A DNA stretch of 64,000 nt from Paramoeba atlantica (Eukaryota; Protista; Discosea): NCBI GenBank assembly GCA_977017575.1, contig CDRNVI010000002.1, positions 496,001 to 560,000 on the forward strand, in the 5' to 3' direction. Shown here piece by piece: positions 12,551-59,963 of this stretch. Made by a program: the position numbers and the translations under genes. Position 1 is the stretch's first letter, and every line of letters begins with the position of its first letter. The notes beneath the pieces were generated by a model. The model was not told the DNA's origin. It made no database searches and worked only from the letters and a program-made list of their open reading frames with translations.

Positions 12551-13032
12551 AAACCACGAAATGCGGCCACCTACCAGGGCAAGCGATCACTGAGCTGTAT
12601 GCAGTGGGGAAGGTATTGGGGGGAAATTTCCACTTGAAAAATAAGTTGCTCGAAAGTAATATGAGGAAATTTAAGAATGAATATAGATAAATACTTAACT
12701 AACTCTATGGAGTTAGTGTAGAGTGAGTGAGTGAGTGAGTGTGACGCAGTTCAACTTTCGAAAGCATTTACCCGGCTCCAAGCCCTGTTGAAAGACTTTA
12801 GCCTCGTAGTATCAACGCACAAATGCTTGTGGTTTGGAGGGATGGGAAAAGTACCTATGCCTCAAGAGTTATGCGATGCAGAGGTAAGAAATGCGGAACA
12901 CACATTGAAGACTTTAGGCGCATTCATTGGGGAGGACTCTAAGATCAGTGAGCAACTTCTTACTTCTCTCCAGAAACACAACGACATTTTCCGTCGTCTG
13001 AAACTCATGGGGTTAAACAATACTTCTGCGAA

Positions 13033-13470
13033 TTTTTTTTTTTTTTTTTTTTAAATTTTCTTTTTTTGCAATTAATAAGGGGGGGAGAAGTATGAATCGC
13101 GGCATTGCCTCTATATTTTGACCCAGTAGACGAACCAAGTAGGTCCATTGGGGGGGGGGGTATACGAGTTGAAAACAAACAATCAAATTAGCAATTCTTT
13201 TTCTGTCCACAGATGTACCTTTTTTCTCAGCCCAAAACTAGCAATTTAGTCTCCCCTAAGTATATACTACAAACAAGAAAAACAGTAAAAATTAAAACAA
13301 GCAATCCATGCCCAATCCATTCGCGCGTTCCGGACCGGATCTTTCGACCTCTCCACGGCCTGACTTGTGAACCCTTCCCTTGTTATATGGGAGGGCGCAG
13401 GCGCGGGCCTGTGTCGACAGCGACACGGTCGCGAAACAGGATGCTGGCCGACGGGGAGGAGATTCACTTC
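13033..13470 (-). mobile_element. Short polyA-tailed element (CRE 3'UTR-like or SINE-like); homolog of 59507-59927
   Basis: Collinear with 59507-59927; ends TTATTAATTGC-A(n). Confidence 0.75.
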
Positions 13471-13505
13471 CTCTTTTTTTTTTTTTTTTTTTTTTTGCTT
13501 AGTAC

Positions 13506-14253
13506 TTTTTTTTTTTTTTTTTGACTTTATATATGTATGTACGGTATGACTATATGTATAAAACCTCACGAGCGAATTCACAAATGGTCCGAGCAGAAAG
13601 AAATTTTAGAGGCTCAAGAACTATCTGCAAATCCACTGCCGAGAGATGCGGTCCGGTACATCGAGAATACACCGATTTTCGTTTCCTGAGCAGAAAAGGA
13701 TTTTTGGCGCTCGAAAGAAACGCAAACATGATGTTAACCCAACGTCCCATACGCAAACTCTGCGCAGCAGCTTTACGAATTGTACCTGTCGTCACGCACG
13801 TCGACTTGTCCCTCGGCACTTCGACATCCGTTGAAATCATAGCGCAAAGAACCCCGCAAAGAATGATTTGGCACATGGTCCGAGCAGAAAGAGATTTTAA
13901 AGGCTCAAGAACTATTTGCGACACATCCGTTGCCGAGATATGCGAACCTGCCCACCGAGAATACACCAACGCATTCTGTTTCCTGAGCAAAAAAGGACTT
14001 TTGGCGCTCGAAAGAAACATAAACTTGATGTCATTCCAATGACCGATCCACACAAATTGTGCAACAACTCCATGGATTTCGTCGAACAATTCCCACGTTG
14101 ACGTGTCCGAAGGCACTCTACTTCCTCGAAATCCTCCACGCACTCCGATCGTCGCTTGCGGCGCCCCAGCGCCCAGGTACATAAAAGTGAAGGTTGTCAG
14201 AATAAGAAAAAAAAAATCAACAAGGTACAGAAACTGTATCTTTATCGTTAAAG
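13506..14253 (-). pseudogene. Retrocopy of a trans-spliced mRNA: SL, 5'UTR, 210-aa ORF (14182-13550), polyA
   Basis: SL at 14253-14218, ATG 14182, stop at 13550, A17 about 30 nt later; ORF has two internal repeats. Confidence 0.8.
14218..14253 (-). other. Spliced-leader exon copy
   Basis: ACAGTTTCTGTAC core plus 7 nt ending TTG, as in the kinetoplastid SL; no GT donor follows. Confidence 0.85.
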
Positions 14254-15610
14254 AAATTGTTGTCAAAATGCGTTAACGTCCGACAAAGATATCAAATGCG
14301 GGTGCACCATCCCGATGCTTCGGAGGCATTGACAGAACGTTTTGATAAAGAGGTGGAAGACGTTCTACAATCCTGGTTCGGATCACTCACAAAGGAGCAA
14401 ATAACGCAAATCAGGCTACCGGTGAAGAAAGGCGGGTTAGGTTTAACAGCGTGCCTTCCAACGAGACATGCCGCTTTTGAATCTTCATGGTTTTCGGTTT
14501 TTGAGCGCCCAAAAAATCTTTCAGCTCGGACTGAACAACGTGAAGTAAACGCAAGGGACAGCGCCCACAGCGACAAGGACAAAAACGTGCCATTCGACGA
14601 ACACACAGTAGCGGCAAAACTACATACGCAGGCGTGGGAATCTTTAACATCATCGACAGCGAATAGTGCCTCCATCCTGAAAGCGGTAAGTTACACGGGT
14701 AATGCAGAATGGGTTATGTCCAATGCAAAATTTGTGCCCTCGCATTTGTTCTCGCTTGCAATGATGCCGAGATTGGGTATTGCTCATCCGAGTCTACCTA
14801 AGCAATTGCTCTGCCCTGGTTGCAAAATGCTACTAGAATCGCAAACAATTTTAACACACATCCCCGGGTGTTCGAAGTGCCCAGGCTTAAACGCAACTAC
14901 AAAACATAATTCGCTAGTCAATTTTCTTTACGAGCTCTGTTTGAAGGCAGGCATTCCATGCGAAAAAGAACCGCGTAATTTCTCGACATATGCGTGCACG
15001 CAGTGTAACCAGAAAGTGGACTCCGATTACCGGCGGACGCATGAAAAGGTATGCGGTGGTCGTTCTTTTCGAAGATCAGGACCTGACCTTGTCGTTTTTT
15101 GGAATACAGGGGAAATTTTTTATGATTTCACCGTAATTCATGAATTAGCGCCATCGAACCTAGGTACAAACTGTGCAAAGCTGTTTCGTGATGCCATCAA
15201 ACGAAGGCATGACACTTACGTCCGACCCGGCACAATTCCTGAGGACATGTTCAGATGCATTCCAATGCTGTCAGGGGGGCGCTTCACCACAACACGAAGT
15301 CCCTTCTGAGTGCTCTAGCAGATGCGTGCTGTCTCCCCCGGAAGCAAGTACACCTCGAATTTCAGCTCCACCTGCAAGAGTTAAATGGGGCCGTTGTGCA
15401 TTCACAGCTGAGGTCTTTTCTGGAGAAGGATAAGGGTGCCGCAGAGTTGGGAATTTAGAGTTGGAGATCCATGGTCAAAAGAGAATCCGAACTTCTAATC
15501 GATATTAGAAGCTAAGTCAGACTGCATAATTTACAAAAAGGAAAACATATGATCTACTCAGTGGGTATTAAACATATTATTATAAGAGTTTTCCAAGCGC
15601 AAGAAAATAC

Positions 15611-15792
15611 TTAACAAAAGAAAGGGTCTTAACAAAAGAAAGGGTCTTAACAAAAGAAAGGGTCTTAACAAAAGAAAGGGTCTTAACAAAAGAAAGGGTC
15701 TTAACAAAAGAAAGGGTCTTAACAAAAGAAAGGGTCTTAACAAAAGAAAGGGTCTTAACAAAAGAAAGGGTCTTAACAAAAGAAAGGGTCTT
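15611..15792 (+). repeat. 18-nt tandem array (AACAAAAGAAAGGGTCTT)x10
   Basis: Directly visible; reverse complement AAGACCCTTTCTTTTGTT resembles the main satellite. Confidence 0.95.
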
Positions 15793-15838
15793 AACAAAAG
15801 ACTTTCATGCAAGCAATGCCAGCCACACGCAAGAAGAC

Positions 15839-15874
15839 CTTTAACGATAAAGATACAGTTTCTGTACCTTGTTG
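15839..15874 (+). other. Spliced-leader exon copy 22 nt upstream of a CRE ATG
   Basis: Same 36-mer; ATG at 15897. Confidence 0.85.
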
Positions 15875-15896
15875 TTTTTTTTATCTCCTTACCTTT

Positions 15897-18036
15897 ATGG
15901 GCGTGACTACTCGCGCCAAGGCAAAAGAATCGGGGGAAACCCCAATGATTTTGCCCCTTCCAGCTCGGCGGAGGAAGAAAGCACCCCCAGCGTCACCGTC
16001 CACACTCTCGGTCGCCCCTGCCCCCGCCCCCGTGTTAACACCAGAGAAGGTTTCTACAAGCATTGCCGACGCACAGTCAACGCGAATCAAGTCACCGGGT
16101 GTGGAATTCCAGGGAAGCAAGTTGTCCTCGCAGCAAGCGCCGTCCACACCACATTCTACGCCTTCCCCGCCGAGGGCCCCAAGGCCGAGCATGCATACAC
16201 TATCTCGGAGAGCGCGAGTGAAGGCGCACTCGTCTCGAATGTCGACTAGTCCCTCGCCGATATTAAACCAAATGCAAAGGGTCGGAGCGCACATGGAAAA
16301 AAAAGTCGGAGCGCACAGTATATCGGTCACAACACTTTCATACGCTAAGGCACTTTCAAGCTCGCCCGCTAGATCGCCACGCACAGCTAGAGCAGAGGAG
16401 ACAGAGGAACCAATCGACGACATAGTTCTGCGCCCGTTGAATCCGACGGCACGGATACTCTCCGACGAAGAACTGTTCCACCAAAGGAAAGAACGCAAAC
16501 AAGCTAGATGGGAATATCACGAAAAACTACGCAAAGAGAGGATAGCGAAGAATTCAGCTGCAAAGGCCATCGTTGCGCAGAGCGCTACTGAGCCACCCGT
16601 CCCATCTACTCCTCCTTTGATCCCTCCGCGGCTTCCTCCGCCACTTCCCTCGCCAACTCCAGCGATCAAATCCACGGTTACAATACCGGCTAAATTGTTT
16701 TCCAAGGATCTTCTGTCAAACATTTTTTGTCGCCGCGCAAAAAAACACCCGGAAAGTGATACGACCGCGATACTGACCGCGATCAGCCAGGTGGAAACAC
16801 CCAATACGTCAAAGGTCAACGGGATGGAGCCCCACACTCCCATGACGGGCAAGGATGACTCGTGCGAGATCGAAGAGAACCAACTGGTAAGGGAAGATCC
16901 CGCGATACACGCAGCCTCGTCAGAAACTGATCTCATAGAAACACCCCATAGAAACGCTCATCTGATAAATTCTAGCTCGCCAACGAGAACTCAGGAAATA
17001 TTCCATGACTTCACCTCGCCACCGCCAACGATTCCTTTCGACGATCGCAGCCTCGTTAAAGAGCTTATAACAAACGTATCCCCTTCGTATGATTTTCCGC
17101 TATCATCAGAAACAATTTTGAAACACGCGAAATCGGCGAAAACGGGCGAAGAGGTCGTTGTGGCTTGGAGTTTCGACCGTCAAAACAAACTTAACATTTC
17201 ATCCGGGAAGGTCTTAGGGAAGAAAGGAAGAGGAGGTGCGGCAAAAATAGCTGTGGAATATCTCGGACTTTATGGTCACCGCACCGGGGAGAGCCTTACC
17301 GGCCAACTACCCCCACATAACAACGTCCGTATCTACAAAATTATCTGGAAGAGCGGAAAGAATGTCGAAGAAGAGCTACATAACACAGATCAGCTTAATA
17401 CTACTTCTACTACGGAACAGGATCTCGATTTCGAGCCGCTGCCCACCATGCGTACCATACCTGCCGAATATATTCCCGGAGAAGTGATGATTTTTAGAGA
17501 CATACTTCGAGATTATCCCGACAGCAATTACGAGTATCGCAATAGAATATGGCACCGTTTGATGTCTGCTACGAAACATTCCTTAGCCACAATCCGAGAA
17601 ACTGCAGGCAAGAAGCGGCGGCGGAAGCCGCATCCCCATGAGGTGTCCCAGTGTTCACCTGCAGAGGAAAACCTCGAAAAGGCAGATATACGTGCGGCAA
17701 AAAAAGCTATCCGTCTTGCTTTGGAGGGTTGCACCTCCAAAGCAACAAAGGTTCTGGACATAGAGGTAAGAAAAGGTCGATTATCCGACGCTGAAACTCT
17801 TGCAAAGTTAGAGGCTCTTCACCCACAATTGCCGTGCAGTTTCCAACTCCCCACCGATGCACCCGCTATCGCATGTGTCACATCCGTTGAATTGCGAGAA
17901 GCAGGCAGACGTCTAGCAAAGGGGGCTGCTCCAGGTCCTTCTGGCATGACGGACGGTATCCTACGCATTCTTCTCGATGACGAGACCTGTTGCTCATGCC
18001 TCTGCCACATGATGAGGGATTTGGTAAATGGAAATT
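15897..18036 (+). mobile_element. CRE-like (A) 5' portion, truncated in early RT
   Basis: MGVTTRAKAKESG, VAWSFDRQ domain, LHPQ, GAAPGPSG. Confidence 0.85.
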
Positions 18037-18288
18037 ATAAGTATACGTTTAGAAATTTAGGATGATTGATATAATGGCCCTTCGGGGCACATAATATTTA
18101 TATTATGAGATATGATTTGTTTGTTTTGTTTATATAAGTGTACGTTTAGAAATTTAGGATGATTGATATAATGGCCCTTCGGGGCACATAATATTTATAT
18201 TATGAGATATGATTTGTTTGTTTTGTTTAGAGATTTCATTTATTTAGTTTGGTATAGTGACACTCCTTCTCTAACCTTTTTATTGCGG
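18037..18288 (+). repeat. About 250-bp repeat with internal duplication and GCCC-TTCG-GGGC hairpin; identical copy at 21636-21887
   Basis: Identity of the two copies; related to the reverse complement of 10906-11113. Confidence 0.85.
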
Positions 18289-22152: not shown

Positions 22153-22903
22153 TTTCCTGTCCAAAGATATCATGCACCGAATTAAACGAGCCAGGCTCCT
22201 AGCGCTTCCGAAACCGGACAATGGTGTCAGACCGATTGCAATGGGTGAGGTAATCTTGAAACTCGCGGAAATACTTCTTCTTCAGCGCTATGAAAAGTCT
22301 TTACCCCCACTGTTCGCGCCATACCAATACGGGGTAATGATGAAGAGCGGTTGCGAAAAAGTAATACACGAATTAACTGACTTACATCGCTTAGGGCATG
22401 CGATTCTTTCGGTAGACCTCCGTAACGCATTTAACTCGCCGTCCCGCGACGACATATCAAGATGTGTTTTCGGTTTTTCCACACTGAGACCTTTCAGAAG
22501 GATGTTCACAGCTGAGTACGCAGATCCATCCGAGCTTCTTTTCTACGGCGCAGATGGGAAATTTGCAGGAGTGGTGCAAAGTTCCTCTGGCGTGCGTCAA
22601 GGCTCCCCTCTCTTGACGCTCTACTTTTGCGCTTTGATGCAACCAATACTCGAGACGCTGGCAGAAGAATTTCCTGGAATCAAAATCTTTGCCTTCATTG
22701 ATGACATCAACTTGGCCTCAGCAAACAGTACCCTCCTGGCGAAAGCCTTCGACCGGTTACGTGCACTCCTGACGGCGAACAGCTTAGAAGTTGCGCCCAC
22801 GAAATGTGTCTGGTTCGGAGGGAAGAATAAGATACAGCTTCCTGATTTACTACACGATCAAGGCATAAGATGTGAGTTTGAAATCATAAAAATTCTTTCA
22901 TAG
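22153..22903 (+). pseudogene. CRE-like (A) RT fragment
   Basis: GVRPIAMGE, SVDLRNAFN, GVRQGSPL, AFIDDI. Confidence 0.88.
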
Positions 22904-27378: not shown

Positions 27379-30099
27379 ATGAGGCCTGAGTTAATACCAG
27401 GCGTCATCGCCACATACCGAGAAATAATGAGTGACTACGCGAACAGCCCTTACCCACAAAGACACAAAATCTGGCACGCGGTCCTCTCGGCCATGAAAAC
27501 ATCCTTAGCTACACTTCGACAACAATCCAATCGCAACAGACGTCGGCGACCATTCCCGCCGGAGGAAACAGCGCGAGACTCAGCCCAACAGAATATGAAA
27601 GATGGGAAAGCACTTTTGGATCGTTCGAATGGAAAAGAAGACAATGGAGACGAACTTTCGGAGAACAAGGGAGACCTCACGGCTTCTGATAAACGAGCCA
27701 TTAAAAGAGCAACACGGCTCGTGATAGAAGGATATGCCAGGAAAGGAGCTCAAGTGCTTGACCGCAAAATTGAGAAGCAATACTTATCCGAAGAAGAGAC
27801 ATTCAAGAAACTTCAAGACTTACACCCACAAAACCCATACGAACTTGATCTTCCATGTGACGCCCCCCTAATAGGCGGACTCACCCCTACTGAACTCCGC
27901 TCTGCTGGGTTGCGCCTCGCCAAAGGAGTTAGCCCCGGACCAACTGGTACGACGGACACGATAGTACGCATACTCATCGATGGCCCTGTATGCTGCGGGA
28001 GTCTTTGCCACATGATTCAGGACCTGATCAATGGATTTCTCACTAAAGAACTGATGCGCCGATTAACACGAGCAAGGTTAATTGGTATTCCCAAGCCTGA
28101 TGGAGGCATCCGCCCGATCGCAATTGGTGAAGTCCTAATGAAACTTTCTGGCTTGGTCCTTGTTCAGCGATTTGAACCCACCCTGCAACCGCTATTTGCG
28201 CCGCTCCAACAAGGAGTGCTATCTAAGTCAGGCTGCGAGAAGATTGTACATCGGCTAAACTCCCTATATCGCGACGGCTCGTGCATCCTATCCGTAGATG
28301 TAAAAAACGCCTTCAACTCCCCATCGCGACCAGCCCTGGCGAAAGCCGTATATGGTCTTGCTACATTGAAACCCTTCCAGAGGTTTTTCCATGCTGAATA
28401 CGCAACGGCATCTGAGTTGCTATACTACGGAAATCAAGGTCACCATGTAGGAACAATTCCAAGCACAAATGGTGTCCGACAAGGGTCCACACTTTCATCG
28501 GTTTATTTCTGTGCCCTATTGCAACCAATCCTTGAAACTCTGTCTGCAGAGCACCCTGATATCACAATCAACGCTTATGTCGATGATGTAACTATTGCGT
28601 CAAAAAACCCCGAGCGATTGGCCAGTGCCTTCTCCCGACTAAAAACGCTTCTAGAGGAACAAAATCTAATAGTTGCTCCCAAAAAATGTGTCTGGTTTGG
28701 CGGACTGGAAGAAGAACCATTACCACAAGAATTAGAGAGCGCCGGGGTAATCACCAAAAAAAAAGCAACAAAAATCCTTGGGGCTTTCATCGGGGACGAC
28801 AAATCGGTCAGCGAACGCCTAATACAGTCACTGACGAAGCACAACGACAGCTTCCGACGGCTCAAATTGATGGGGGTTAACAATGTATCGTGCAATCTGC
28901 TTTCCAGATGTATAAACGTTAGACAGGCCTACCACCTCCGTGCACACAACCCCACCGCTTCAGCTGAACTAGCGACCCGATTCGACAAAGAGGTAGAAAA
29001 CGTTCTTACATCATGGTTCGGACATCTCTCGGATGAACAAATCGCGTTGCTGCGAATGCCCACAAAAAAAGGAGGACTTGGCTTGACAGACTGCTCTTCC
29101 ACGCGAGAGGCCGCGTACCGCTCCTCATGCCACTCTGTTCTTGAGCGCCCCATAAACAATTCAGCTCGGACAGATGGAATCAGGGAGCGAAATGTTGGAT
29201 CAGCGGGCCACCTTCAGAGCAACATACCTCCGGTAGACGAAACCACGACGGCGGCTCAAAAGCACATCAAAATTTGGAAAAAGATGACCCGCGAGCAATC
29301 AAACATAGCGAAGGTACTCGAAAAAGTAACACACAAAGGCAATAACGGATGGACGCACTCTGACGCGCGACTCATACCATCACACCTGTTCAGTCTCGCC
29401 GTCATGCCCCGATTGGGGATCGCTCACCCAGATCTGCCATCACACATCACATGCCCCGGCTGCAGAATTCTTCTTGACTCCGATTCAATCTTGACACACA
29501 TCATGGGCTGTACAAAATGCGGTGGTCTCAATGCCACGACTAAACACAACACTCTGGTCAACTTCATTTACGAACTCTGTATGAAAACAGGCATTCCGTG
29601 CGAAAAGGAGCCCCGTGCACTGTCAACTTTCCGCTGCACACAATGTAACGAGATCGTTAACCCCAATCACCGAAAACTTCACGAGAAAACGTGTGGTGGG
29701 CGGTCGTTTCATCGGTCCGGTCCTGACATTGTTATATATTGGGCAACCGGCGAGATATACTACGATCTAACAGTCATCCACGAATTGGCACCCTCAAACC
29801 TTGACACAAAGTGTGCACATTTATTCCGCGACGCCTGTCGACGAAAACATGACACATACTTCAAGACCGGGAAGATCATGGCTGAAAGCTTTCAATGTAT
29901 ACCTGTCCTCTCAGGGGGTGCAATGCATTCAAACACGATGGCTCTTATGGATGCTCTCGCAGATGCCTGTGGAATGCAACGCAAACGCGTTTATGCCGAA
30001 TTTCAGCTATTGTTGCAGGAGCTTAATGGGGCGGTAGCATATTCACAGCTGAGTCGATACCTTCGCAAGGAGGACAAAAGTCGGGAATATGCTTTCTAA
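27379..30099 (+). CDS. RT plus Zn fingers plus RLE of CRE-like element
   Basis: AYVDDV, GGLGL, CPGC..H..C..C, KHN, RSGPDI, YYDLTVIHE. Confidence 0.93.
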   Translation: MRPELIPGVIATYREIMSDYANSPYPQRHKIWHAVLSAMKTSLATLRQQSNRNRRRRPFPPEETARDSAQQNMKDGKALLDRSNGKEDNGDELSENKGDLTASDKRAIKRATRLVIEGYARKGAQVLDRKIEKQYLSEEETFKKLQDLHPQNPYELDLPCDAPLIGGLTPTELRSAGLRLAKGVSPGPTGTTDTIVRILIDGPVCCGSLCHMIQDLINGFLTKELMRRLTRARLIGIPKPDGGIRPIAIGEVLMKLSGLVLVQRFEPTLQPLFAPLQQGVLSKSGCEKIVHRLNSLYRDGSCILSVDVKNAFNSPSRPALAKAVYGLATLKPFQRFFHAEYATASELLYYGNQGHHVGTIPSTNGVRQGSTLSSVYFCALLQPILETLSAEHPDITINAYVDDVTIASKNPERLASAFSRLKTLLEEQNLIVAPKKCVWFGGLEEEPLPQELESAGVITKKKATKILGAFIGDDKSVSERLIQSLTKHNDSFRRLKLMGVNNVSCNLLSRCINVRQAYHLRAHNPTASAELATRFDKEVENVLTSWFGHLSDEQIALLRMPTKKGGLGLTDCSSTREAAYRSSCHSVLERPINNSARTDGIRERNVGSAGHLQSNIPPVDETTTAAQKHIKIWKKMTREQSNIAKVLEKVTHKGNNGWTHSDARLIPSHLFSLAVMPRLGIAHPDLPSHITCPGCRILLDSDSILTHIMGCTKCGGLNATTKHNTLVNFIYELCMKTGIPCEKEPRALSTFRCTQCNEIVNPNHRKLHEKTCGGRSFHRSGPDIVIYWATGEIYYDLTVIHELAPSNLDTKCAHLFRDACRRKHDTYFKTGKIMAESFQCIPVLSGGAMHSNTMALMDALADACGMQRKRVYAEFQLLLQELNGAVAYSQLSRYLRKEDKSREYAF

Positions 30100-41120: not shown

Positions 41121-43913
41121 ATGACTGTCTCCAAAATAACCTTCTATGTACATTTTCTCATTCGATACAATGGTCTTCAAAATTACTTTCGCATGCTTTC
41201 AAATCATCAGATGAACTTTCCAGAAAAAGCCAAAGATGATTCATCAGTGGATTTGTTACCAATACCCACGCTACGTTCAATAAGCCCTGACCTCGCTCCG
41301 TGTGTTGTCGTGGTGCTGAGGAACATCGTCCAGGAGTATATAAATTCCGATCACACGCAAAGAACAAAAATATGGCACCGTTTGCTATCAGCCATTAAGT
41401 TATCCCTAGCGACTGTTCGAGAAAACAGTGGAAAAAGGCGAAGACGGCGCCCGTTACGGGAGCCGTCTGACGGTGAACGAAAAGAGGAGACACTGAGCGA
41501 TACACGGGCCATCAAACGAGCGACAAGGCTAGTATTGGAAGGATGTACTTCCAAGGCAGCCAAGGTCTTGGATCAGACCTTTACACCAAAGCAACTAACG
41601 GATGAAGAGACCCTTGACAAGCTTGCCGCATTACATCCGCAAAGACAATACGAAGTTTCTTTGCCGGAGGATGCGCCGATAATTAGCGGAATAATGACGG
41701 AGGAGCTACGGAAAGCTGGGAAGCGACTCGCAAAAGGCGTAAACCCTGGCCCAACTGGAATGACAGACGGGATTGTGCAACTCATGCTCGATGATGAGAT
41801 CTCATGCACTAATCTTGCCCATATGATATCGGATCTAATCAACGGATTCGTGGATCACAGCGTTTTGTTTCGATTAAACCGAGCACGGCTCGTAGCCATT
41901 CCTAAATCCAACGGAGGAGTCAGACCAGTGGCAATGGGCGAGATATTTATGAAGCTTGCCGGCGTTATATTGCTCCAGCGCTACGAACACACTTTGGGCC
42001 CTCTTTTTGCACCACTGCAACACGGCATTTCGTCAAAGGCAGGATGTGAAAAAATCGTTCATAGACTGCATGAGCGTCTTAAGTCTGGACACGTCATTCT
42101 TTCCATTGACGCCAAAAACGCCTTCAACTCCCCGAATAGGGCGGATATTGCCAAACACGTATTTGCTTGTGGTACACTACGCCCGTTTCAACGGATCTTT
42201 CACGCTGAATACGGCCAACCCTCAGAGCTACTGTATTACGGATCCGATGGAACGCTTTTCGGAGCCATTCCCAGCACATGTGGTTTGCGGCAAGGTTCCC
42301 CGCTGGCATCTCTATACTACTGCGCCTTCCTGCAGCCACTATTGGAGATTCTGAAACAAGAGTTTCCCGACATCGAAATATATGCGTTTATTGATGACGT
42401 GAACGTGGCTTCGAAAAACCCACAATCATTGGCCAAAGCATTTGTAAGGCTCCAAGAAATGGTGAATGCTCACAACATTGAACTTGCTCCTGGAAAATGC
42501 GTGTGGTTCGGTGGACAGGAAAAAATCCCGATTCCAGAACAGCTTGCAAATGAAGGGGTCAAGGCTGCGTACGGTTCTATAAAGATCCTTGGGGCACACC
42601 TTGGAGAAGACGAATCTGTAAAGTCGGGTTTGTTTCAGCAGCTTGTCAGGAATACCGAAGCCTTTCGCCGATTAAAACTTATGGGCGCCAACAATGTCTC
42701 ACTTTTGCTACTTTCCAAAAGCATGAATGTGAGGCATCAATACGCCATAAGAGTGCACGAGCCAACGTTAACCGACGCGGTCTCTCTCAGTTTCGACAAC
42801 AACGCCGAAAAAGTGCTGCACCAGTGGTTGGGAGAAATGACCAAAGAGCAAATCGAATTGGCTCGGCTGCCGCTAAAGAAAGGAGGCCTCGGTCTGACAT
42901 CATGTCATAGTATTCGTGCGGCGTCATACGAAACTTCTCGTTACCTAGCTCTAGAGCGCAAAAACTCAATTTCTGCTCGGGCGGGCAATGTGAGTAACGT
43001 ATCCGCTATCATGGATAATGGAATGAGTCAAACAGCAGTGGTCGCCCCAATTGATGAAGTAACAACAGCCGCGCAATTGCACCAGAAAGCATACGAGGCT
43101 TTAAAGGATCACGATCCCAAGCTAGCCACAATATTAAATGCCACCACACGGAAAGGAAGTTATGACTGGTTACAGTCTAATGCTAAATTTGTACCCACGC
43201 GTGCATTTCAGATTGCAATCATGACACGCCTTGGGATGCCTCATCCTCGACTCCCGAAATCGCTGCTGTGCCCCGGCTGTCGTATGTTACTCGACAACAA
43301 AACAGCTTTGCAGCACATCCCCGGATGTTTCCAATGTACAGGGCTTAATGCCACAGTAAAGCACAATCGGCTGGTTAAGTATATCTTCGATTTGGCGCAA
43401 AAGGCCGGTATACAATGCGAGAAAGAACCGCGATCTTTTTCGACTTGGCAATGCGGAATTTGCAAGAATAAAGTGTTTCCAAGCAACAAAATGATTCATG
43501 ACAAAACATGTGCCGGACGTCAGCTGTTTCGCTCAGGGCCGGATTTGGTGATATATTGGTCAACCGGGGAAATATTTTATGATCTAACCGTGGTGCACGA
43601 GCTATCGAACTCCAATCAAGTGAAATCTTGTTCCCAGCTTCTTACAGATGCAATCAAGCGGAAACGGGATACATATGTGACATCCGGAAAAATTCCCGAC
43701 TTCGCATTTCAGTGCATCCCAGTGCTGTCCTGCGGCTCTCTTCATCAAAATACGAGATCTCTGTTGCATGTCCTATCCGACGCGGCACTCTTAAATCGTC
43801 GAGCAACTGAAATGGAGTTCAAGCTCCTACTTCAGGAACTTAATGGGACGGAAGTGTACGCCCAGTTGCGGAACCACTTATCCCCGGAAGGCAGCAGCAG
43901 GTACAGCATTTGA
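41121..43913 (+). CDS. CRE-like (A) RT-RLE ORF (5'-truncated element)
   Basis: AFIDDV, GLRQGSPL, GGLGL, RSGPDL, FYDLTVVHE. Confidence 0.93.
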   Translation: MTVSKITFYVHFLIRYNGLQNYFRMLSNHQMNFPEKAKDDSSVDLLPIPTLRSISPDLAPCVVVVLRNIVQEYINSDHTQRTKIWHRLLSAIKLSLATVRENSGKRRRRRPLREPSDGERKEETLSDTRAIKRATRLVLEGCTSKAAKVLDQTFTPKQLTDEETLDKLAALHPQRQYEVSLPEDAPIISGIMTEELRKAGKRLAKGVNPGPTGMTDGIVQLMLDDEISCTNLAHMISDLINGFVDHSVLFRLNRARLVAIPKSNGGVRPVAMGEIFMKLAGVILLQRYEHTLGPLFAPLQHGISSKAGCEKIVHRLHERLKSGHVILSIDAKNAFNSPNRADIAKHVFACGTLRPFQRIFHAEYGQPSELLYYGSDGTLFGAIPSTCGLRQGSPLASLYYCAFLQPLLEILKQEFPDIEIYAFIDDVNVASKNPQSLAKAFVRLQEMVNAHNIELAPGKCVWFGGQEKIPIPEQLANEGVKAAYGSIKILGAHLGEDESVKSGLFQQLVRNTEAFRRLKLMGANNVSLLLLSKSMNVRHQYAIRVHEPTLTDAVSLSFDNNAEKVLHQWLGEMTKEQIELARLPLKKGGLGLTSCHSIRAASYETSRYLALERKNSISARAGNVSNVSAIMDNGMSQTAVVAPIDEVTTAAQLHQKAYEALKDHDPKLATILNATTRKGSYDWLQSNAKFVPTRAFQIAIMTRLGMPHPRLPKSLLCPGCRMLLDNKTALQHIPGCFQCTGLNATVKHNRLVKYIFDLAQKAGIQCEKEPRSFSTWQCGICKNKVFPSNKMIHDKTCAGRQLFRSGPDLVIYWSTGEIFYDLTVVHELSNSNQVKSCSQLLTDAIKRKRDTYVTSGKIPDFAFQCIPVLSCGSLHQNTRSLLHVLSDAALLNRRATEMEFKLLLQELNGTEVYAQLRNHLSPEGSSRYSI

Positions 43914-44139
43914 GCCAAACGTATCAACATAGTTTCGCTTTTCAATGCCTATATTAAGAGTTTACGAAAAGAATTTTAGGAAGTGTGCAGTGGTTAACGT
44001 GTTTCATGCACGCACCAACCAGTGCAATCTTGAATACATCTTTAGCATATACTGCACTTTTACGCATAAACTTTACGTGTAATGTACTTTTGTTTCGTTA
44101 TTTCATATAATATTTCTTAGAAGAAGATTCTTAGGACGA

Positions 44140-46639
44140 TAGAGCGGAGCGGGTGAATGCCTTGTTTAAGGATCATGGTCTTCCACCTGAGCAGCGGTAC
44201 ACATTCAACGGTATAACATATCACCATCGTGAGGGGAAGGTATCACTGGGACCAAAATTGACCCGCAGATTAGAGCATGATGAATTTATTGGTGCTACGT
44301 ATTCATCGTTAGAGGCTGGTGTCGGACGTCTGGTTTTTGCCTCAGGTGTCATGGGTGTGAATCTACCTCAATATCATCTGGAGTTAAAAATTGTGCGCCG
44401 GAGAATCAATAGGTTAAATCGAGAACCCGAACTGCTCGATCAAATCACTTGGGGATGTCGATCTCGAGGGTAGTGCCGGACGAAGATATCAACAAAGAAA
44501 AGATGGTCTTTAACAAAAGATGGTCTTTAATCTTTTTTTTTTTTTTCGTATTCCTAATTTATCCTCCTACCTTTTCCACTTCTTCCTATTACTACTGAGT
44601 CACCCTTTGCCTTAGCTTTTTGAGCAACCATGGGGTTATAGGTATCATTTTTTTTTTTTTCACTTTTTATAAAGAACAGTGACAAAGAACACTACATAAG
44701 AAAAAGGTCTGTTTCAAAGTAAACTTCGTAGCCTGACATCCTCGTCTTCTTTTCTTCGTCTGACGCAATCGTCTCAAAAGGTGAGTTCACTTTCTTTTCT
44801 GTCCCGTGATATGTATTTCCTAAGTTGTGAGTACGCCACTGCACCATTCAGCTCCTGTAACAATACCTGGAACTCTGATTTGATTTGTTGTCTCTGACTT
44901 CCGCTAGCGTCCGCAAGTGCTGAGAGCAGGGATTGCGTGTTCGTGTGCATCGCGCCTCCTGACAGGATGGGGATACATTGAAAGGAGCTTTCCGATATTT
45001 TTCCAGATTTCACGTATGTGTCGTGTTTGCGCTTGGAGGCCTCTCGAAACAGCTGGGCGCATTTCGTCGCAAGATTGGAGGGAGCGAGTTCATGTACAAC
45101 GGTTAGGTCGTAATATATTTCCCCACTTGCCCAATAGATAACGAGATCTGGCCCGGACCGACGGAAAGATCTGCCTCCACATGCTCGTTCGTGGGTCCGT
45201 TTGTGGTTTGGTTCAACCATATCGTTGCATTGTGTGCAACGGAGGGTGGAAAAAGTTCGAGGCTCCTTTACACACGGAATGCCGGTTTTTAAACACAGTT
45301 CGTATAAGAAGTTGACCAGGGTGCTGTGCTTTACCGTTGCGTTTAAACCAGCGCATTTTGAGCATCCTGTAATATGTCGTATCATGTTGTCAGAATTCAG
45401 AAGAATTTTGCACCCTGGACAAATAATATGGGAGGGCAAATCCGGATGTGCAATTCCAAGTCTCGGCATTATGGCAAGTCGGAAGAGGTGGGGTGGAATT
45501 AATTTTGTGTCCGACAGTACCCACTCGCTGTTTCCTTTGAATGCTACTTTCTCGAGTATTTTGGACATGTCCGATGTGCCGCTTGTCAATTTCTTCCAGG
45601 TTCTAGAGTGTATCTGGGCTGCCGTAGTTGTTGTGTCATTGGGAGGAATACTTGTGTGCTGCTGGTCGTGGGCGCTTTGTATTTCGAGGTTGTCGGTCCG
45701 AGCTGAGTTGTTCACTTGTTGCTCAAGAACCGAGTACCTGGATGATTCATATGCTGCCCTTCTTGTCGTTGCGCATGCTGTTAATCCTAAGCCCCCTTTC
45801 TTCGTTGGCATGCGTATTAGCGACATTTGTTCTTCATTTAATTCTCCGAACCACGATTCGACCACTTTCTCAGTTTCCGTGTCAAAGCCCTCCGCTGAAT
45901 TTTCGGAGGCGGCGGGATTGTGAACACGCATATGATATGTCTGTCTTACATTGACACACTTGGAGAGAATCTTGCATGACAGGTTGCTAGGGCCCATGCG
46001 CTTGAGTCGACGGAATATGTCATTGTGTTTCTCCAACGACTTCGACAAACATTGACTCACAACTTTATCATCTCCAACGAACGCTCCCAGTACAGACACG
46101 CTCCCACGACACGCTCCCAGTATCAAATAGTGCCCTTGCCAACGCCAGTACGGGTTGCGCTAACTGAGTGGCGCGATACCCTTTTATATCGATCGCCGGT
46201 GGTTCCGCTTCCGCATCCGGAAACAGTTCCGCATCGGCACATTTTATGTACAGACGCCTCCTCGAAGGGTTGGGGGGCAGTTTTATATCTGGATTACGGA
46301 CAAATGTTGTGCACTGGATCTCAATGGCCCCCTGATTTCGAGTATGAAGTTAACCGCGCGGAAGCGCGGGCTGTTCGCTTGGTCTTTCAAAAATATGGTC
46401 ATCATTTCAACTCGGATACATGCGTCGACCTGTATGTTGACAATACTTCGTGCGTTGCTGCGATAAATAGAAAAATGCCACGTTCAGACGGTATAACTTC
46501 TGAGCTACGCCGGTTGTTAGATTTCTTAAAGCGTAAAGGTGTCGCCGTTCAGGCACAGTATATTTGTTCGAACGAAAATCCGGCCGATCCTTATAGTAGA
46601 CTCTGCACGGTAGACTCGGATAAAGCAGATGTCATGTAG
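44140..46639 (+). pseudogene. YR-element RT tail plus RNase H (further family), split by the 44446-46121 insertion
   Basis: Uninterrupted copy at 54256-55059; LCTDASSKGWG, NPADPYSR. Confidence 0.85.
44446..46121 (-). mobile_element. Composite insertion: 5'-truncated CRE-A (ORF to 44774, A-tail 44648-44661) plus about 200 bp of extra sequence; 7-bp TSD ATCAAAT
   Basis: TSD 44439-44445 and 46122-46128; empty site at 54542-54548. Confidence 0.9.
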
Positions 46640-47039
46640 TCGACTTACTTTGAATTTGAAGATACGATACCAAAAAAAAAAAAAAAAATGTAGCAGTGAA
46701 TATCGAGAAGCACGGGCACGGTGAGCGATACGGAAATTCCTTATGATTTATTTTGGCGGAGTAGGCACCGCTGAAATACATCAACGTGCGATTGGGTTGT
46801 AAATGGAAGTAGGACGAGCGAATGGGTGGTCCCCGCGTCACCCGTTCGCAAGCTGGGAGAGGACAGAAGTGTTGTGGGATTATTTAATTTTGTTATGTTA
46901 TTACCGGTCATACAGTATTCATATGAATTTTGAATGTGCATAGAATTGAACGTATCAAATATCAGATAGAAGAGGGGAATGAAGATATTGTTTTGCTTAG
47001 TGCTTTCTTTCTTTCTTATAATATTTATGATGCACAATT

Positions 47040-48351
47040 CGGCGCATACATCGGTGATCCAGATTGTATCAGTCAGAAACTTTGTGACATTCTACAGAAG
47101 CACCAATCAGCATTTCGTAGACTAAAAAAAATGGGGATCAACAATGTGTCCACTCTACTACTATCAAAGTGCGTAAACATCAGACACCGTTACCACATTC
47201 TGGTACATGATCCACAACAAACTCTGGATATGGCCTCTGATTTCGACGCAGAAGTAAATAAAACCCTCAAGGCTTGGCTAGGCAACCTCACGGACCGACA
47301 GATATCTTGGCTACGTCTACCGACGCGCAAGGGTGGACTGGGAGTCACCCCCATCGAACCACTACGTGAATCTTCGTACAGCGCTTCAAAATTTGCTGCT
47401 CTTGAGCATCGAAAACCCTCTTCAGCTCGGGCAACCCAAACGATGAATGCGCCAACTCCGGTTGATGGTGATTCTCGCGACCCCTACATCAATTTCGATG
47501 AGCAAGCTAGTGAAGCAAAATACCACAACAAGGTCCGTCAAGCCTTAATAGAGGAAAAAACACTTGCGCCCATCATCAAACTAGCGTCTCACAAGGGTCA
47601 ATACGCTTGGCTCACATCCAAAGCTCGTCTAGTGCCTAGTTCAGCATTCAAATTATCGATTATGCCGAGATTCGCACTACACCACCCACAAATCCCGGAC
47701 GATGTTCAATGCCCTGGGTGCAAAAGTCTCCTTACGTCATCTACCATACTAAATCATATCCCTGAGTGCGCAAAATGTGCAGGAGTAAATGTGACAACCA
47801 AACACCACGCCTTAGTTCGGTACATCTATGAGCTTTGCTTGAAGAGTGGCCTCACCTGTGAAAAAGAACCTCGGCAATTTTCTTCATTTCAGTGCTCCGG
47901 ATGCCAGAATAGTGTAACCGAGGAAAATCTCACAGAACACCAGCGCAGCTGTCGCGGCAGTGTCCGCAGATCTGGGCCCGACCTTATGATCTACTGGGCA
48001 GACGGTCCGATGTATTATGACCTAACTGTAGTTCACGAGTTTTCAGCAGCTCACATAAACAAAACGCCTCAAAAAATGATGAACGAAGTCATCACGAAGA
48101 AACGCGACCGTTACGTAACTTCTGGGATGATTGCGAATGATCGTTTCATGTGTATCCCTGTCCTTTCGGGTGGAGCGCTACATAAGTATACAAAACGTCT
48201 ATTAACAGCTTTAGCAGATCGTTGCCTTATTTCACGGCAACATATATTAGAAGACTTTGCCCTGTACCTCCAAGAACTGAACGGGAACATAGTTCTGTCG
48301 CAGATGCAAAAATATTTAACTCCCGACAAGGAAGAACAATACACCATATAA
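47040..48351 (+). pseudogene. CRE-like (A) C-terminal fragment; duplicate at about 55457-56769
   Basis: FRRLKKMG, GGLGV, CPGC, RSGPDL, YYDLTVVHE. Confidence 0.88.
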
Positions 48352-48632
48352 GTTCAGACAGTGGACCAAAAGAGATGATCTCCCTCTCGTTTTTAATCAG
48401 ACAGGAAAATGCATGTTTGTTCTGCTATTAAAGCTAGTTTGCAAAAAAAAAAACGAGAACGAAAAACTATACGAAGCCACCAATACTGTGGAAAACAGAG
48501 TGATGCGGAACAAAAAAAAAAGTGGTGGAAAGTTGTATTCTATTCTTTTGAATACTTTATATCCTTAATGTTATGTTATGTTATGTGTTCAGGTTAATAC
48601 AAAAAAAAAGTTTATAATAATACCAAAGTGAA

Positions 48633-48686
48633 AAGGTACAGAAACTGTATCTTTAACGATAAAGATAGAGTTTCTGTACCTTGTTG
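48633..48686 (+). other. SL exon (48651-48686) preceded by its own inverted copy (fold-back hairpin)
   Basis: 23-bp arms with ACGA loop; one C>G mismatch in this copy. Confidence 0.85.
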
Positions 48687-48822
48687 AAATTTAGGATGAT
48701 TGATATAATGGCCCTTCGGGGCACATAATATTTATATCTAAACATGAAGCAATCAAACACTCACGAAACTCAAACGTCTTTCTGCTGTGTATCCCAATAC
48801 GACATTAAATTCTTCTTGCTGT

Positions 48823-51223: not shown

Positions 51224-54016
51224 ATGACTGTCTCCAAAATAACCTTCTATGTACATTTTCTCATTCGATACAATGGTCTTCAAAATTACTTTCGCATGCT
51301 TTCAAATCATCAGATGAACTTTCCAGAAAAAGCCAAAGATGATTCATCAGTGGATTTGTTACCAATACCCACGCTACGTTCAATAAGCCCTGACCTCGCT
51401 CCGTGTGTTGTCGTGGTGCTGAGGAACATCGTCCAGGAGTATATAAATTCCGATCACACGCAAAGAACAAAAATATGGCACCGTTTGCTATCAGCCATTA
51501 AGTTATCCCTAGCGACTGTTCGAGAAAACAGTGGAAAAAGGCGAAGACGGCGCCCGTTACGGGAGCCGTCTGACGGTGAACGAAAAGAGGAGACACTGAG
51601 CGATACACGGGCCATCAAACGAGCGACAAGGCTAGTATTGGAAGGATGTACTTCCAAGGCAGCCAAGGTCTTGGATCAGACCTTTACACCAAAGCAACTA
51701 ACGGATGAAGAGACCCTTGACAAGCTTGCCGCATTACATCCGCAAAGACAATACGAAGTTTCTTTGCCGGAGGATGCGCCGATAATTAGCGGAATAATGA
51801 CGGAGGAGCTACGGAAAGCTGGGAAGCGACTCGCAAAAGGCGTAAACCCTGGCCCAACTGGAATGACAGACGGGATTGTGCAACTCATGCTCGATGATGA
51901 GATCTCATGCACTAATCTTGCCCATATGATATCGGATCTAATCAACGGATTCGTGGATCACAGCGTTTTGTTTCGATTAAACCGAGCACGGCTCGTAGCC
52001 ATTCCTAAATCCAACGGAGGAGTCAGACCAGTGGCAATGGGCGAGATATTTATGAAGCTTGCCGGCGTTATATTGCTCCAGCGCTACGAACACACTTTGG
52101 GCCCTCTTTTTGCACCACTGCAACACGGCATTTCGTCAAAGGCAGGATGTGAAAAAATCGTTCATAGACTGCATGAGCGTCTTAAGTCTGGACACGTCAT
52201 TCTTTCCATTGACGCCAAAAACGCCTTCAACTCCCCGAATAGGGCGGATATTGCCAAACACGTATTTGCTTGTGGTACACTACGCCCGTTTCAACGGATC
52301 TTTCACGCTGAATACGGCCAACCCTCAGAGCTACTGTATTACGGATCCGATGGAACGCTATTCGGAGCCATTCCCAGCACATGTGGTTTGCGGCAAGGTT
52401 CCCCGCTGGCATCTCTATACTACTGCGCCTTCCTGCAGCCACTATTGGAGATTCTGAAACAAGAGTTTCCCGACATCGAAATATATGCGTTTATTGATGA
52501 CGTGAACGTGGCTTCGAAAAACCCACAATCATTGGCCAAAGCATTTGTAAGGCTCCAAGAAATGGTGAATGCTCACAACATTGAACTTGCTCCTGGAAAA
52601 TGCGTGTGGTTCGGTGGACAGGAAAAAATCCCGATTCCAGAACAGCTTGCAAATGAAGGGGTCAAGGCTGCGTACGGTTCTATAAAGAACCTTGGGGCAC
52701 ACCTTGGAGAAGACGAATCTGTAAAGTCGGGTTTGTTTCAGCAGCTTGTCAGGAATACCGAAGCCTTTCGCCGATTAAAACTTATGGGCGCCAACAATGT
52801 CTCACTTTTGCTACTTTCCAAAAGCATGAATGTGAGGCATCAATACGCCATAAGAGTGCACGAGCCAACGTTAACCGACGCGGTCTCTCTCAGTTTCGAC
52901 AACAACGCCGAAAAAGTGCTGCACCAGTGGTTGGGAGAAATGACCAAAGAGCAAATCGAATTGGCTCGGCTGCCGCTAAAGAAAGGAGGCCTCGGTCTGA
53001 CATCATGTCATAGTATTCGTGCGGCGTCATACGAAACTTCTCGTTACCTAGCTCTAGAGCGCAAAAACTCAATTTCTGCTCGGGCGGGCAATGTGAGTAA
53101 CGTATCCGCTATCATGGATAATGGAATGAGTCAAACAGCAGTGGTCGCCCCAATTGATGAAGTAACAACAGCCGCGCAATTGCACCAGAAAGCATACGAG
53201 GCTTTAAAGGATCACGATCCCAAGCTAGCCACAATATTAAATGCCACCACACGGAAAGGAAGTTATGACTGGTTACAGTCTAATGCTAAATTTGTACCCA
53301 CGCGTGCATTTCAGATTGCAATCATGACACGCCTTGGGATGCCTCATCCTCGACTCCCGAAATCGCTGCTGTGCCCCGGCTGTCGTATGTTACTCGACAA
53401 CAAAACAGCTTTGCAGCACATCCCCGGATGTTTCCAATGTACAGGGCTTAATGCCACAGTAAAGCACAATCGGCTGGTTAAGTATATCTTCGATTTGGCG
53501 CAAAAGGCCGGTATACAATGCGAGAAAGAACCGCGATCTTTTTCGACTTGGCAATGCGGAATTTGCAAGAATAAAGTGTTTCCAAGCAACAAAATGATTC
53601 ATGACAAAACATGTGCCGGACGTCAGCTGTTTCGCTCAGGGCCGGATTTGGTGATATATTGGTCAACCGGGGAAATATTTTATGATCTAACCGTGGTGCA
53701 CGAGCTATCGAACTCCAATCAAGTGAAATCTTGTTCCCAGCTTCTTACAGATGCAATCAAGCGGAAACGGGATACATATGTGACATCCGGAAAAATTCCC
53801 GACTTCGCATTTCAGTGCATCCCAGTGCTGTCCTGCGGCTCTCTTCATCAAAATACGAGATCTCTGTTGCATGTCCTATCCGACGCGGCACTCTTAAATC
53901 GTCGAGCAACTGAAATGGAGTTCAAGCTCCTACTTCAGGAACTTAATGGGACGGAAGTGTACGCCCAGTTGCGGAACCACTTATCCCCGGAAGGCAGCAG
54001 CAGGTACAGCATTTGA
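51224..54016 (+). CDS. CRE-like RT-RLE ORF (duplicate)
   Basis: Near-identical to 41121-43913. Confidence 0.93.
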   Translation: MTVSKITFYVHFLIRYNGLQNYFRMLSNHQMNFPEKAKDDSSVDLLPIPTLRSISPDLAPCVVVVLRNIVQEYINSDHTQRTKIWHRLLSAIKLSLATVRENSGKRRRRRPLREPSDGERKEETLSDTRAIKRATRLVLEGCTSKAAKVLDQTFTPKQLTDEETLDKLAALHPQRQYEVSLPEDAPIISGIMTEELRKAGKRLAKGVNPGPTGMTDGIVQLMLDDEISCTNLAHMISDLINGFVDHSVLFRLNRARLVAIPKSNGGVRPVAMGEIFMKLAGVILLQRYEHTLGPLFAPLQHGISSKAGCEKIVHRLHERLKSGHVILSIDAKNAFNSPNRADIAKHVFACGTLRPFQRIFHAEYGQPSELLYYGSDGTLFGAIPSTCGLRQGSPLASLYYCAFLQPLLEILKQEFPDIEIYAFIDDVNVASKNPQSLAKAFVRLQEMVNAHNIELAPGKCVWFGGQEKIPIPEQLANEGVKAAYGSIKNLGAHLGEDESVKSGLFQQLVRNTEAFRRLKLMGANNVSLLLLSKSMNVRHQYAIRVHEPTLTDAVSLSFDNNAEKVLHQWLGEMTKEQIELARLPLKKGGLGLTSCHSIRAASYETSRYLALERKNSISARAGNVSNVSAIMDNGMSQTAVVAPIDEVTTAAQLHQKAYEALKDHDPKLATILNATTRKGSYDWLQSNAKFVPTRAFQIAIMTRLGMPHPRLPKSLLCPGCRMLLDNKTALQHIPGCFQCTGLNATVKHNRLVKYIFDLAQKAGIQCEKEPRSFSTWQCGICKNKVFPSNKMIHDKTCAGRQLFRSGPDLVIYWSTGEIFYDLTVVHELSNSNQVKSCSQLLTDAIKRKRDTYVTSGKIPDFAFQCIPVLSCGSLHQNTRSLLHVLSDAALLNRRATEMEFKLLLQELNGTEVYAQLRNHLSPEGSSRYSI

Positions 54017-54255
54017 GCCAAACGTATCAACATAGTTTCGCTTTTCAATGCCTATATTAAGAGTTTACGAAAAGAATTTTAGGAAGTGTGCAGTGGTTAA
54101 CGTGTTTCATGCACGCACCAACCAGTGCAATCTTGAATACATCTTTAGCATATACTGCACTTTTACGCATAAACTTTACGTGTAATGTACTTTTGTTTCG
54201 TTATTTCATATAATATTTCTTAGAAGAAGATTCTTAGGACGATAGAGCGGAGCGG

Positions 54256-57050: not shown

Positions 57051-57104
57051 AAGGTACAGAAACTGTATCTTTAACGATAAAGATACAGTTTCTGTACCTT
57101 GTTG
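57051..57104 (+). other. SL exon (57069-57104) with perfect fold-back hairpin
   Basis: AAGGTACAGAAACTGTATCTTTA-ACGA-TAAAGATACAGTTTCTGTACCTT. Confidence 0.88.
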
Positions 57105-59927: not shown

Positions 59928-59963
59928 CACATCCCAAATTGCTGCAAGGCGGAATGGTCTCGA

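Follow-up and report, generated by a model that had tools for sequence, protein, structure and literature searches.

A chain of RNA copies bounded by a spliced leader and poly(A), inserted within a CRE-like LINE of Paramoeba atlantica

The window, by which we mean the whole 64,000-nt stretch of Paramoeba atlantica DNA analysed here, contains a precise 1.2-kb insertion at positions 13033-14253, with the minus strand as its sense strand. The insertion lies in a 5'-truncated copy of a CRE-like LINE whose architecture combines a reverse transcriptase (RT), a CCHC finger and a restriction-like endonuclease (RLE). It consists of DNA copies of four or five RNAs arranged head to tail; X, the 37-nt and 9-nt pieces and the LINE-tail unit all read in minus-strand sense. 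The features of the host copy and of the insert, the latter in sense order, are the following.

12731..13032, plus strand: left part of the host LINE ORF, comprising the end of the RT and the thumb (tblastn; translation)
14256..15455, plus strand: right part of the host LINE ORF, comprising the linker, CCHC finger and restriction-like endonuclease motif (translation; tblastn)
13030..13032, no strand: left copy of the target-site duplication, AA or GAA (empty-site contig; sequence)
14253..14255, no strand: right copy of the target-site duplication, AA at 14254-14255, or GAA from 14253
14253-14218, minus strand: spliced leader (SL) relic, full 36 nt, joined directly to X
13560..14217, minus strand: RNA X, 658 nt, 97-99% identical to L001-L006
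14217-14183, minus strand: T-rich 5'UTR of X
14182-13550, minus strand: 210-aa ORF from ATG (translation), with the X break at 13560
13559-13523, minus strand: 37-nt piece, delimited by comparison with other X copies
13522-13506, minus strand: A17
13505-13497, minus strand: GTACTAAGC (9 nt)
13496-13474, minus strand: A23
13473-13469, minus strand: GAGGA, found in neither neighbour
13468-13068, minus strand: 401-nt unit derived from a LINE 3'UTR
13067-13056, minus strand: A7-G-A4, the short tail of the LINE-tail unit
13055-13053, minus strand: TTT
13052-13033, minus strand: terminal A20

The left part of the host matches residues ~413-506 of the 906-aa ORF at 27379-30099 (tblastn), and the host copy as a whole covers residues ~413-903 of that ORF. 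The CCHC and endonuclease motifs were read in the translation of 14257-15309, the endonuclease motif as GPDLVV...YDFTV, and a frameshift lies near 15276. Being both 5'-truncated and frameshifted relative to the 906-aa ORF, the host copy, which sits among other repeats, was already dead before the insertion. Its left half ends in ...MGLNNTSA and its right half (from 14256) starts with KLLSKCVNVRQ, so that joining the flanks restores the reading frame as NNTSA-K-LLSKC, a single codon lying at the joint. Five homologous copies within the window carry the uninterrupted motif MG.NN.S...LSKC.N.R, with exactly one residue at the place of the joint. The target duplication measures 2-3 nt: it reads AA, or GAA when the first C of the SL (14253) is assigned to the flank. 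The primary target, GCGAA/ATTG, contains no A-run.

Four read sets (runs X1-X4) under the same organism label contain most of the stretch. A 1209-nt contig from run X3 (record 19) aligns to 12750-13024 and 14253-14800 with five letters between them; it therefore represents an empty site, reading ...TCTGCGAAATTG..., with AA or GAA as the duplicated sequence. Record 11 of run X2 extends 35 letters beyond 13024, which would correspond to these five letters plus a 30-letter (k-1) overlap with a right-flank contig, as along an empty-site path. In run X1 the contigs break off at 13032 and resume at 14253, which are precisely the borders of the insert, as expected if filled and empty forms are both present. 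The flanks have about the same read depth as X, a family of at least eight copies, so the empty forms could represent paralogous LINE copies instead of alleles. Words across the 13559/13560 joint were recovered in four of four sampled cases (13523-13600) in run X1 and in one of four in X2. By depth arithmetic, the joint between X and the 37-nt piece is present at ~1-2 copy equivalents in X1 and absent from X2, X3 and X4. This leaves two readings of the insertion, a very recent polymorphism or a feature specific to the assembled sample; X1 may be the sample from which the contig was assembled.

A preliminary description made from the sequence of the window had listed the SL, 5'UTR, 210-aa ORF, A17, GTACTAAGC, second A-run, short element and tail, and all of them are present on the minus strand. 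Its claim of a CRE ORF split by an insertion, with flanks that rejoin in frame around a 2-3 nt duplication, is confirmed by the five homologs and the empty-site contig. Its account of a precisely bounded single insertion of several RNA-derived pieces, in one orientation and running from a full SL to poly(A), likewise agrees with our findings. Three of the listed elements required correction. The 210-aa ORF exists but is chimeric: X breaks off at 13560, and the undisturbed X ORF has 233 aa. The "440-nt element" is also real, but it measures 401 nt, derives from a LINE 3'UTR, is preceded by GAGGA and lacks 57 nt at its 5' end. The insertion does end in poly(A), but its tail is A7-G-A4-TTT-A20 (13067-13033) and not a plain A-run.

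The SL relic at the 5' end of the insert is followed directly by X, with no intron-like GT after it in the window copy, and is therefore the spliced form. The 36-nt sequence recurs identically at 15839-15874, 57069-57104, L001 6406-6371 and L007 2514-2549, and begins with CTTTAACG in all five full copies; its 20-nt core has six matches in the window against 0 expected. The leader is of the euglenozoan type (...ACAGTTTCTGTAC...) and presumably resembles the leaders of kinetoplastids and diplonemids. A literature search for the SL string gave no match. Rfam searches at gathering and E-value thresholds and a tRNA search returned nothing for an SL RNA gene, X or the 440-nt unit, and Rfam found no SL RNA gene elsewhere in the window. 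The domain order of the host element is that of CRE/SLACS/CZAR elements, RT followed by the CCHC finger and then the restriction-like endonuclease, and the best solved relatives of the ORF at 27379 are R2 proteins. The host element does not show the site-specific insertion into an SL RNA gene that characterizes CRE and SLACS, and a SLACS/CRE-type origin of the SL sequence in the insert was ruled out: the SL joins X with no SL intron, and the flanks are LINE ORF. A full-length CRE-like relative at 15839 itself begins with a whole SL (15839-15874).

The 210-aa product is the representative of a seven-protein cluster from a single assembly; those loci and one more were fetched for comparison (L001-L007). 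The exact product (P0001) is confined to a single contig. The X sequences form an orphan family with at least eight members, 97-99% identical and divided into two subfamilies, with several copies frameshifted. Searches of 5.8 and 1.8 billion proteins found no relatives of X outside this assembly, and neither X nor the host pieces matched Pfam. No parent locus was found among the eight copies, all of which carry the SL or a remnant of it. X thus lacks both the outside relatives and the identifiable parent with a splice acceptor that would mark a processed pseudogene of a cellular gene. The earlier proposal that cellular mRNAs were captured finds no support in X, which behaves as a repeated 5' partner of chimeras rather than as a demonstrated cellular gene. 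A codon-position test on the X copies gave 5, 6 and 10 changes at positions 1, 2 and 3, which is not significant and therefore uninformative on X coding. Within X, an internal repeat of ~190 nt is formed by 13581-13763 and 13872-14062, which are 80% identical.

The two ends of X behave very differently. The 5' end lies in the SL in eight of eight copies: the leader is full in the window and L007 and reduced to its last 5-8 nt in L001-L006, where the remnants read …(C)(C)TTGTTG. Re-splicing in the dinoflagellate manner was rejected as a source of these remnants, as the AG sites of the leader would leave at least 16 nt rather than 5-8. By contrast, the 3' end of X itself, ...TATTACAGAAT-A14/15, is reached only in L003 and L006, and in six of the eight copies X is cut at different points, with unrelated sequence after each cut. 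In the window copy, the last 143 nt up to the poly(A) site of X are missing; the shortfall is ~10 nt in L001, ~14 nt in L002 and ~30 nt in L004, while L005 retains ~290 nt and L007 ~170 nt of X before the cut. What follows is a trans-spliced RNA in L001, a 5'-truncated RT ORF in L005 and, in L007, a CRE-like element's 5'UTR with GTTG before it. In ordinary retrocopies it is the 5' end that is lost and the 3' end that is retained. The pattern in X, with a constant 5' end and a variable 3' end, is the inverse of this and is what template switching into X predicts. L001-L004 and L006 run on through the break at 13560, so it is the 37-nt piece that supplies the final three codons of the 210-aa ORF and its stop. 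The joint between X and this piece is absent from L001-L007.

Downstream of X, the sources of the 37-nt and 9-nt pieces were not found in 110 kb of this genome, and the 9-mer GTACTAAGC has no other copy there. Together with A23, this 9-mer is either a very short unit or filler followed by a poly(A) tail, and GAGGA would be filler at a switch. The internal and terminal A-runs of the insert are similar in length.

The 3'-most unit of the insert derives from a LINE tail. Its sequence at 13068-13468 is 97.8% identical to L006 4229-4645 and 87% identical to window positions 59507-59927, and it lacks 57 nt at its 5' end relative to L006 4175-4231. Other copies of the LINE tail are found at 59507-59927, partially at 62938-63073, and three times in L006; in these copies ...TTGC leads directly to a plain A-run. 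The head of the unit is 78% identical to the LINE 3'UTR at 62938-63073 and, with the missing 57 nt included, aligns as a homolog of the 3'UTR following the ORF at 59964-62795 (LINE 59964-63265). Over 548 residues this ORF shares 24% identity with the CRE-like ORF; its best solved relative is R2Bm, and it carries a CCHC finger and an RPAD...LDFAV motif. These features identify a second RLE-type LINE family, and the 440-nt element as a derivative of its tail. The unit is present in high copy, its read depth being ~17-90x that of X. It has no pol III-type SINE head (tRNA, 5S or 7SL), with no tRNA and no Rfam match, and the predicted RNA fold of its head is not better than those of shuffled sequences (z = -1.19). 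A protein search with the ORF spanning the inner joints retrieved only two unrelated copies of the LINE-tail head. Target-primed synthesis by an RLE-type LINE would be expected to begin on a template of this kind.

Chains of poly(A)-bearing units are common here. The window contains 17 A-runs of at least 12 nt, which form seven same-strand neighbour pairs no more than 500 nt apart against 1.07 expected; with random placement, none of 10,000 trials reached seven. Chains resembling that of the insert occur on at least five other contigs. L006 shows the order X-A15, 23 nt-A20, LINE-tail variant-A26, LINE tail-A17 and another LINE tail; L003 has X-A14, 34 nt-A19 and 9 nt-A18, with TTGAGGGG flanking both sides; L002 has A23, 13 nt, an 8-nt SL remnant and X. 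In the window, 58603-63366 comprises a CRE 3' end-A14, a LINE tail-A21, a 5'-truncated RLE LINE-A12 and 82 nt-A20. Another composite at 44446-46114 has three units, a 5'-truncated CRE-A13, 101 nt-A14 and 87 nt, within a 7-nt duplication (ATCAAAT). Its empty site is preserved at 54542-54548 in a duplicate that is otherwise 99.7-100% identical, and the time since duplication is so short that three separate insertions at one point are unlikely. L003 and L006 share a block consisting of X-An and a small unit-An in different flanks, which indicates that composite blocks can be recopied whole. Joints of poly(A) to a full SL were also seen in the reads and are hinted at in L001.

The best explanation for the insert, to which we give about an even chance of being correct, is a single target-primed reverse transcription that began on LINE-tail RNA and underwent three or four template switches. 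An RLE-type (R2/CRE-like) LINE enzyme would have nicked the plus strand after ...GCGAA, inside the already dead CRE-like copy. The cDNA synthesis would have started on a poly(A) stretch, represented by the terminal A20, and three untemplated As would have been added to the cDNA (TTT in sense) before the LINE-tail RNA was reached. The RT would then have copied, from its short tail, most of the LINE-3'UTR-derived RNA (13468-13068), come off this template 57 nt short of the 5' end and appended a few untemplated bases (GAGGA). Next, it would have moved on to one or two further RNAs, entering at the poly(A) tail and copying no more than 9 and 37 nt, and finally landed inside RNA X at 13560 and continued to the capped, trans-spliced 5' end. 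Nicking of the second strand 2-3 nt away would account for the duplication.

Several observations argue for this scheme. There is a single short duplication, and the host ORF is restored exactly. X could not have inserted alone, because its own 3' end and poly(A) are absent and no downstream remainder of X lies before the host flank. The 3'-most unit is homologous to the 3'UTR of an RLE LINE; GAGGA has the character of filler at a joint, and the TTT that precedes the last A-run reads as AAA on the cDNA. Further support comes from the second young composite at 44446-46114, from the clustering of poly(A) runs and from the presence of the X/37-nt joint in no other X copy; among the eight X loci there is no second one with the same series of joints. 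The 2-3 nt duplication would fit an RLE enzyme better than an APE enzyme, and an enzyme of the local R2/CRE-like LINEs is a candidate for the reaction. Other observations tell against the scheme. The block shared by L003 and L006 raises the prospect that the window chain might come from a composite transcript, and the X/37-nt joint is confined to run X1 among the four read sets. The preliminary description had an RT chain its templates by jumping from the 5' end of one to the 3' end of the next. The chaining itself fits an RLE-LINE RT and the clustering of poly(A), but the switches are not all clean: the joints entering A17 and A23 are made at 3' ends, while in X the entry point lies 143 nt upstream of the poly(A) site and the LINE-tail donor was abandoned 57 nt short of its 5' end. 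Landing inside X and leaving a template early are unlike the end-to-end jumps described for R2 in vitro.

The shared block lends weight to the reading of the insert as one composite RNA retrocopied in a single pass with no switching, and so does the X1 depth of the X/37-nt joint (~1-2 copy equivalents). Transcription of an older array, with trans-splicing at the X acceptor and polyadenylation downstream of the LINE-tail unit, would have supplied this RNA; euglenozoan polycistronic transcription would read through such arrays. We consider this route unlikely: the joint is found in none of the seven other X loci, the exact product P0001 is on one contig only, and chaining would still be needed to explain how the older array came about. 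A series of independent insertions, in which later elements entered the A-tail of the first retrocopy through an A/T preference of the endonuclease or of priming, would explain the strong clustering of poly(A) runs in one orientation, and nested insertion would preserve the outer duplication. L1 and Alu are well known to insert into A-tails that are already present. The X/37-nt joint cannot arise in this way, as X is cut internally and lacks its own poly(A), though serial insertion could have added units downstream of that joint. The primary target has no A-run, the 9-nt and 37-nt units would require repeated extreme truncation, and the internal A-runs are similar in length to the terminal one. 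The second composite arrived within the short time since a 99.7-100% identical duplication. No partly filled site was seen in the reads, in which the junction flanks (13025-13069 and 13462-13534) are masked as repeats. On this evidence we judge serial insertion rather improbable.

Whether non-LTR RTs copy discontinuous templates in cells, or RNA ligation comes first, is debated; in human assays L1 chimeras arise from pre-ligated RNA and not by discontinuous copying (PMC8857657), which counts against template switching and in favour of joining before or outside reverse transcription. Such joining could involve RNA ligation or the capture of free cDNAs at a double-strand break, and an overlap of 2-3 nt would also fit end joining. 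Against it stands the single orientation of all units, here and in other chains. Poly(A) 3'-OH ends are, moreover, poor substrates for the known RNA ligase route, and target-primed synthesis would predict just what is seen, a chain that starts with a LINE-tail template and stops precisely at the capped SL. Pre-joining therefore seems to us very unlikely. Hardly credible is an artefact of library or assembly, in which a chimeric molecule specific to the sequenced sample would have been incorporated in the contig. The inner joint does occur in run X1 only, with X2 and X3 showing the uninterrupted site, but an in-vitro chimera would come without a target duplication and without restoration of the host ORF to the codon. 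The X1 contigs end at 13032 and start at 14253, precisely at both borders, and chains of this sort are present on at least five other contigs.

Taking template switching beyond this one insert, we consider it possible, and put forward only tentatively, that RLE-type LINE RTs routinely switch several times per insertion, with X as a preferred last acceptor, and that much of the mosaic repeat landscape was built in this way. If so, each joint would record where a template was left and the next one entered, because every pol II RNA has a capped SL and a poly(A) tail. Joints of poly(A) to a full SL cannot come from RNA ligation onto a capped end, and the chains would amount to a natural in-vivo record of true template jumping. 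With both RNA ends tagged by SL and poly(A), chains that are frequent and young, and empty sites available, a census in this genome could settle the frequency of switching, its start and stop points and the LINE responsible. Reverse transcription of trans-spliced RNAs also shapes this genome, which we take to be euglenozoan, as it does those of dinoflagellates.

The process proposed here is known; its form at this locus is unusually long and clearly marked. Chimeric retrogenes produced by template switching of LINEs include U6/L1 in mammals and the WEIRD/Mg-SINE/MGL elements of Magnaporthe, among them rare tripartite ones (PMC2104539; bioRxiv 10.1101/2025.02.02.635956). The insert shares with them the fusion of unrelated transcripts in one orientation, a 3' part derived from a LINE or SINE and here ending in poly(A), a complete 5' end combined with a variable 3' end, and one target duplication around the whole chimera, for which an empty site is at hand. 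Like WEIRD or U6, X contributes the complete 5' end of a highly used RNA. The insert differs in having four or five pieces instead of two or three, in retaining internal poly(A) tails, in its SL-marked 5' end, and in a duplication of 2-3 nt, not 14 nt, in keeping with an enzyme that is likely of the RLE rather than the APE type. In vitro, the R2 RT performs untemplated addition, mostly of A, as well as template jumping (PMC8857657). The local LINEs are R2-like by sequence, with CCHC and RLE motifs; two of the joints enter at a poly(A) tail, and extra bases are found at joints, including TTT (AAA on the cDNA). Unlike the R2 experiments, the present case is a genomic record of events in vivo with a candidate enzyme known from its sequence, and it includes one switch that lands inside its acceptor X and one that exits its donor before the 5' end.

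SL relics are also carried by retrogenes of dinoflagellates (PMC5585692, PMC6050394, PMC12014239), where, as here, the DNA-encoded 5' SL proves passage through a mature trans-spliced RNA. The leader of the present relics is of the euglenozoan type, their carriers are retroelement-like repeats and not host genes, and they are either complete or reduced to the final 5-8 nt, with none of the stacking that re-splicing produces. Among Euglenozoa, our literature search found no report of a chain of this kind, and the Diplonema genome paper mentions only SLACS-like and R2-like genes (PMC10161547). What is new is the combination of four or five pieces, internal poly(A), an SL-marked 5' end, an RLE-type LINE context and high local frequency. 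A word-limited search recovered no named CRE or SLACS protein. The CRE-like LINEs of the window resemble CRE, SLACS and CZAR in their single large ORF, with the RT followed by the CCHC finger and a PD-(D/E)xK-like endonuclease, and in having R2 proteins as closest solved relatives. They depart from these elements in that their copies do not lie in SL RNA genes at nt 11/12, and full-length copies start with a complete SL.

Insertions assembled from several units recur in the window and at other loci carrying X, the repeated RNA of the main insertion. The chains and blocks are as follows.

44446-46114, minus strand: second young composite insertion, in the order 5'-truncated CRE-A13, 101 nt-A14, 87 nt
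58603-63366: further chain of CRE 3' end-A14, LINE-tail unit-A21, 5'-truncated RLE-type LINE with its 3'UTR-A12, and 82 nt-A20
L003 2966-3836 and L006 2966-3827 (other contigs): common two-unit block, X-An followed by a 23-34-nt unit-An

The young insertion is flanked by a 7-nt target duplication (ATCAAAT), and its last unit, of 87 nt, has no A-tail. Its uninterrupted counterpart site is retained at 54542-54548, within a duplicate that is 99.7-100% identical. The two-unit block lies between different flanks in L003 and L006, and reflects either the recopying of composite blocks or a second, downstream poly(A) site of X.

End-to-end jumping would be marked most clearly by joints between a tail and a cap. 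Elsewhere in the genome, in the read contigs, A-runs, or a LINE-tail end with A12, directly abut a full spliced leader (SL) at its 5' end (loose ends at 14249-14254). L001 reads A7-G-SL at 6414-6406.

At the 5' start of X, the SL is reduced to its final 5-8 nt in six of the eight copies (L001-L006), for instance at L002 4122-4129 and L006 2961-2967. The flanks differ among all six copies, and these common remnants suggest that the reverse transcriptase is strongly prone to stop, or to leave the template, approximately 28-31 nt from the cap. TTG also opens several other units that come after A-runs.

At L007 2700-2790, the first ~170 nt of X are joined to the 5'UTR of a CRE-like element, with a tandem duplication of ~38 nt across the joint. 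In L004, X and a 5'-truncated copy of the element with its ORF at window 15807-18065 are arranged head to head; L004 2565-2951 corresponds to window 17649-18035 and L004 2300-2564 to window 22157-22421, leaving ~4.1 kb extra in the window between 18035 and 22157.

Further SL copies lie in the window itself, partly within duplicated sequence.

15600-15874: satellite array, then a full-length CRE-like element (ORF 15807-18065) that opens with a complete 36-nt SL
48629-48687 and 57047-57105: inverted repeat of two SL copies, head to head around ACGA
41121-46900 and 51224-55318: nearly identical segmental duplication, period ~10.1 kb

The complete SL opening the full-length element, immediately preceded by an 18-nt satellite array, shows that this LINE family is itself copied from trans-spliced RNA and not inserted in SL genes. 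In the inverted repeat, one SL is 5'-truncated, and a unit beginning AAATTTAGG is joined to the second; the repeat is present in two places owing to the segmental duplication. The duplication also carries CRE-like ORFs, 41121-43913 being equivalent to 51224-54016 and 46930-48351 to 55348-56769.
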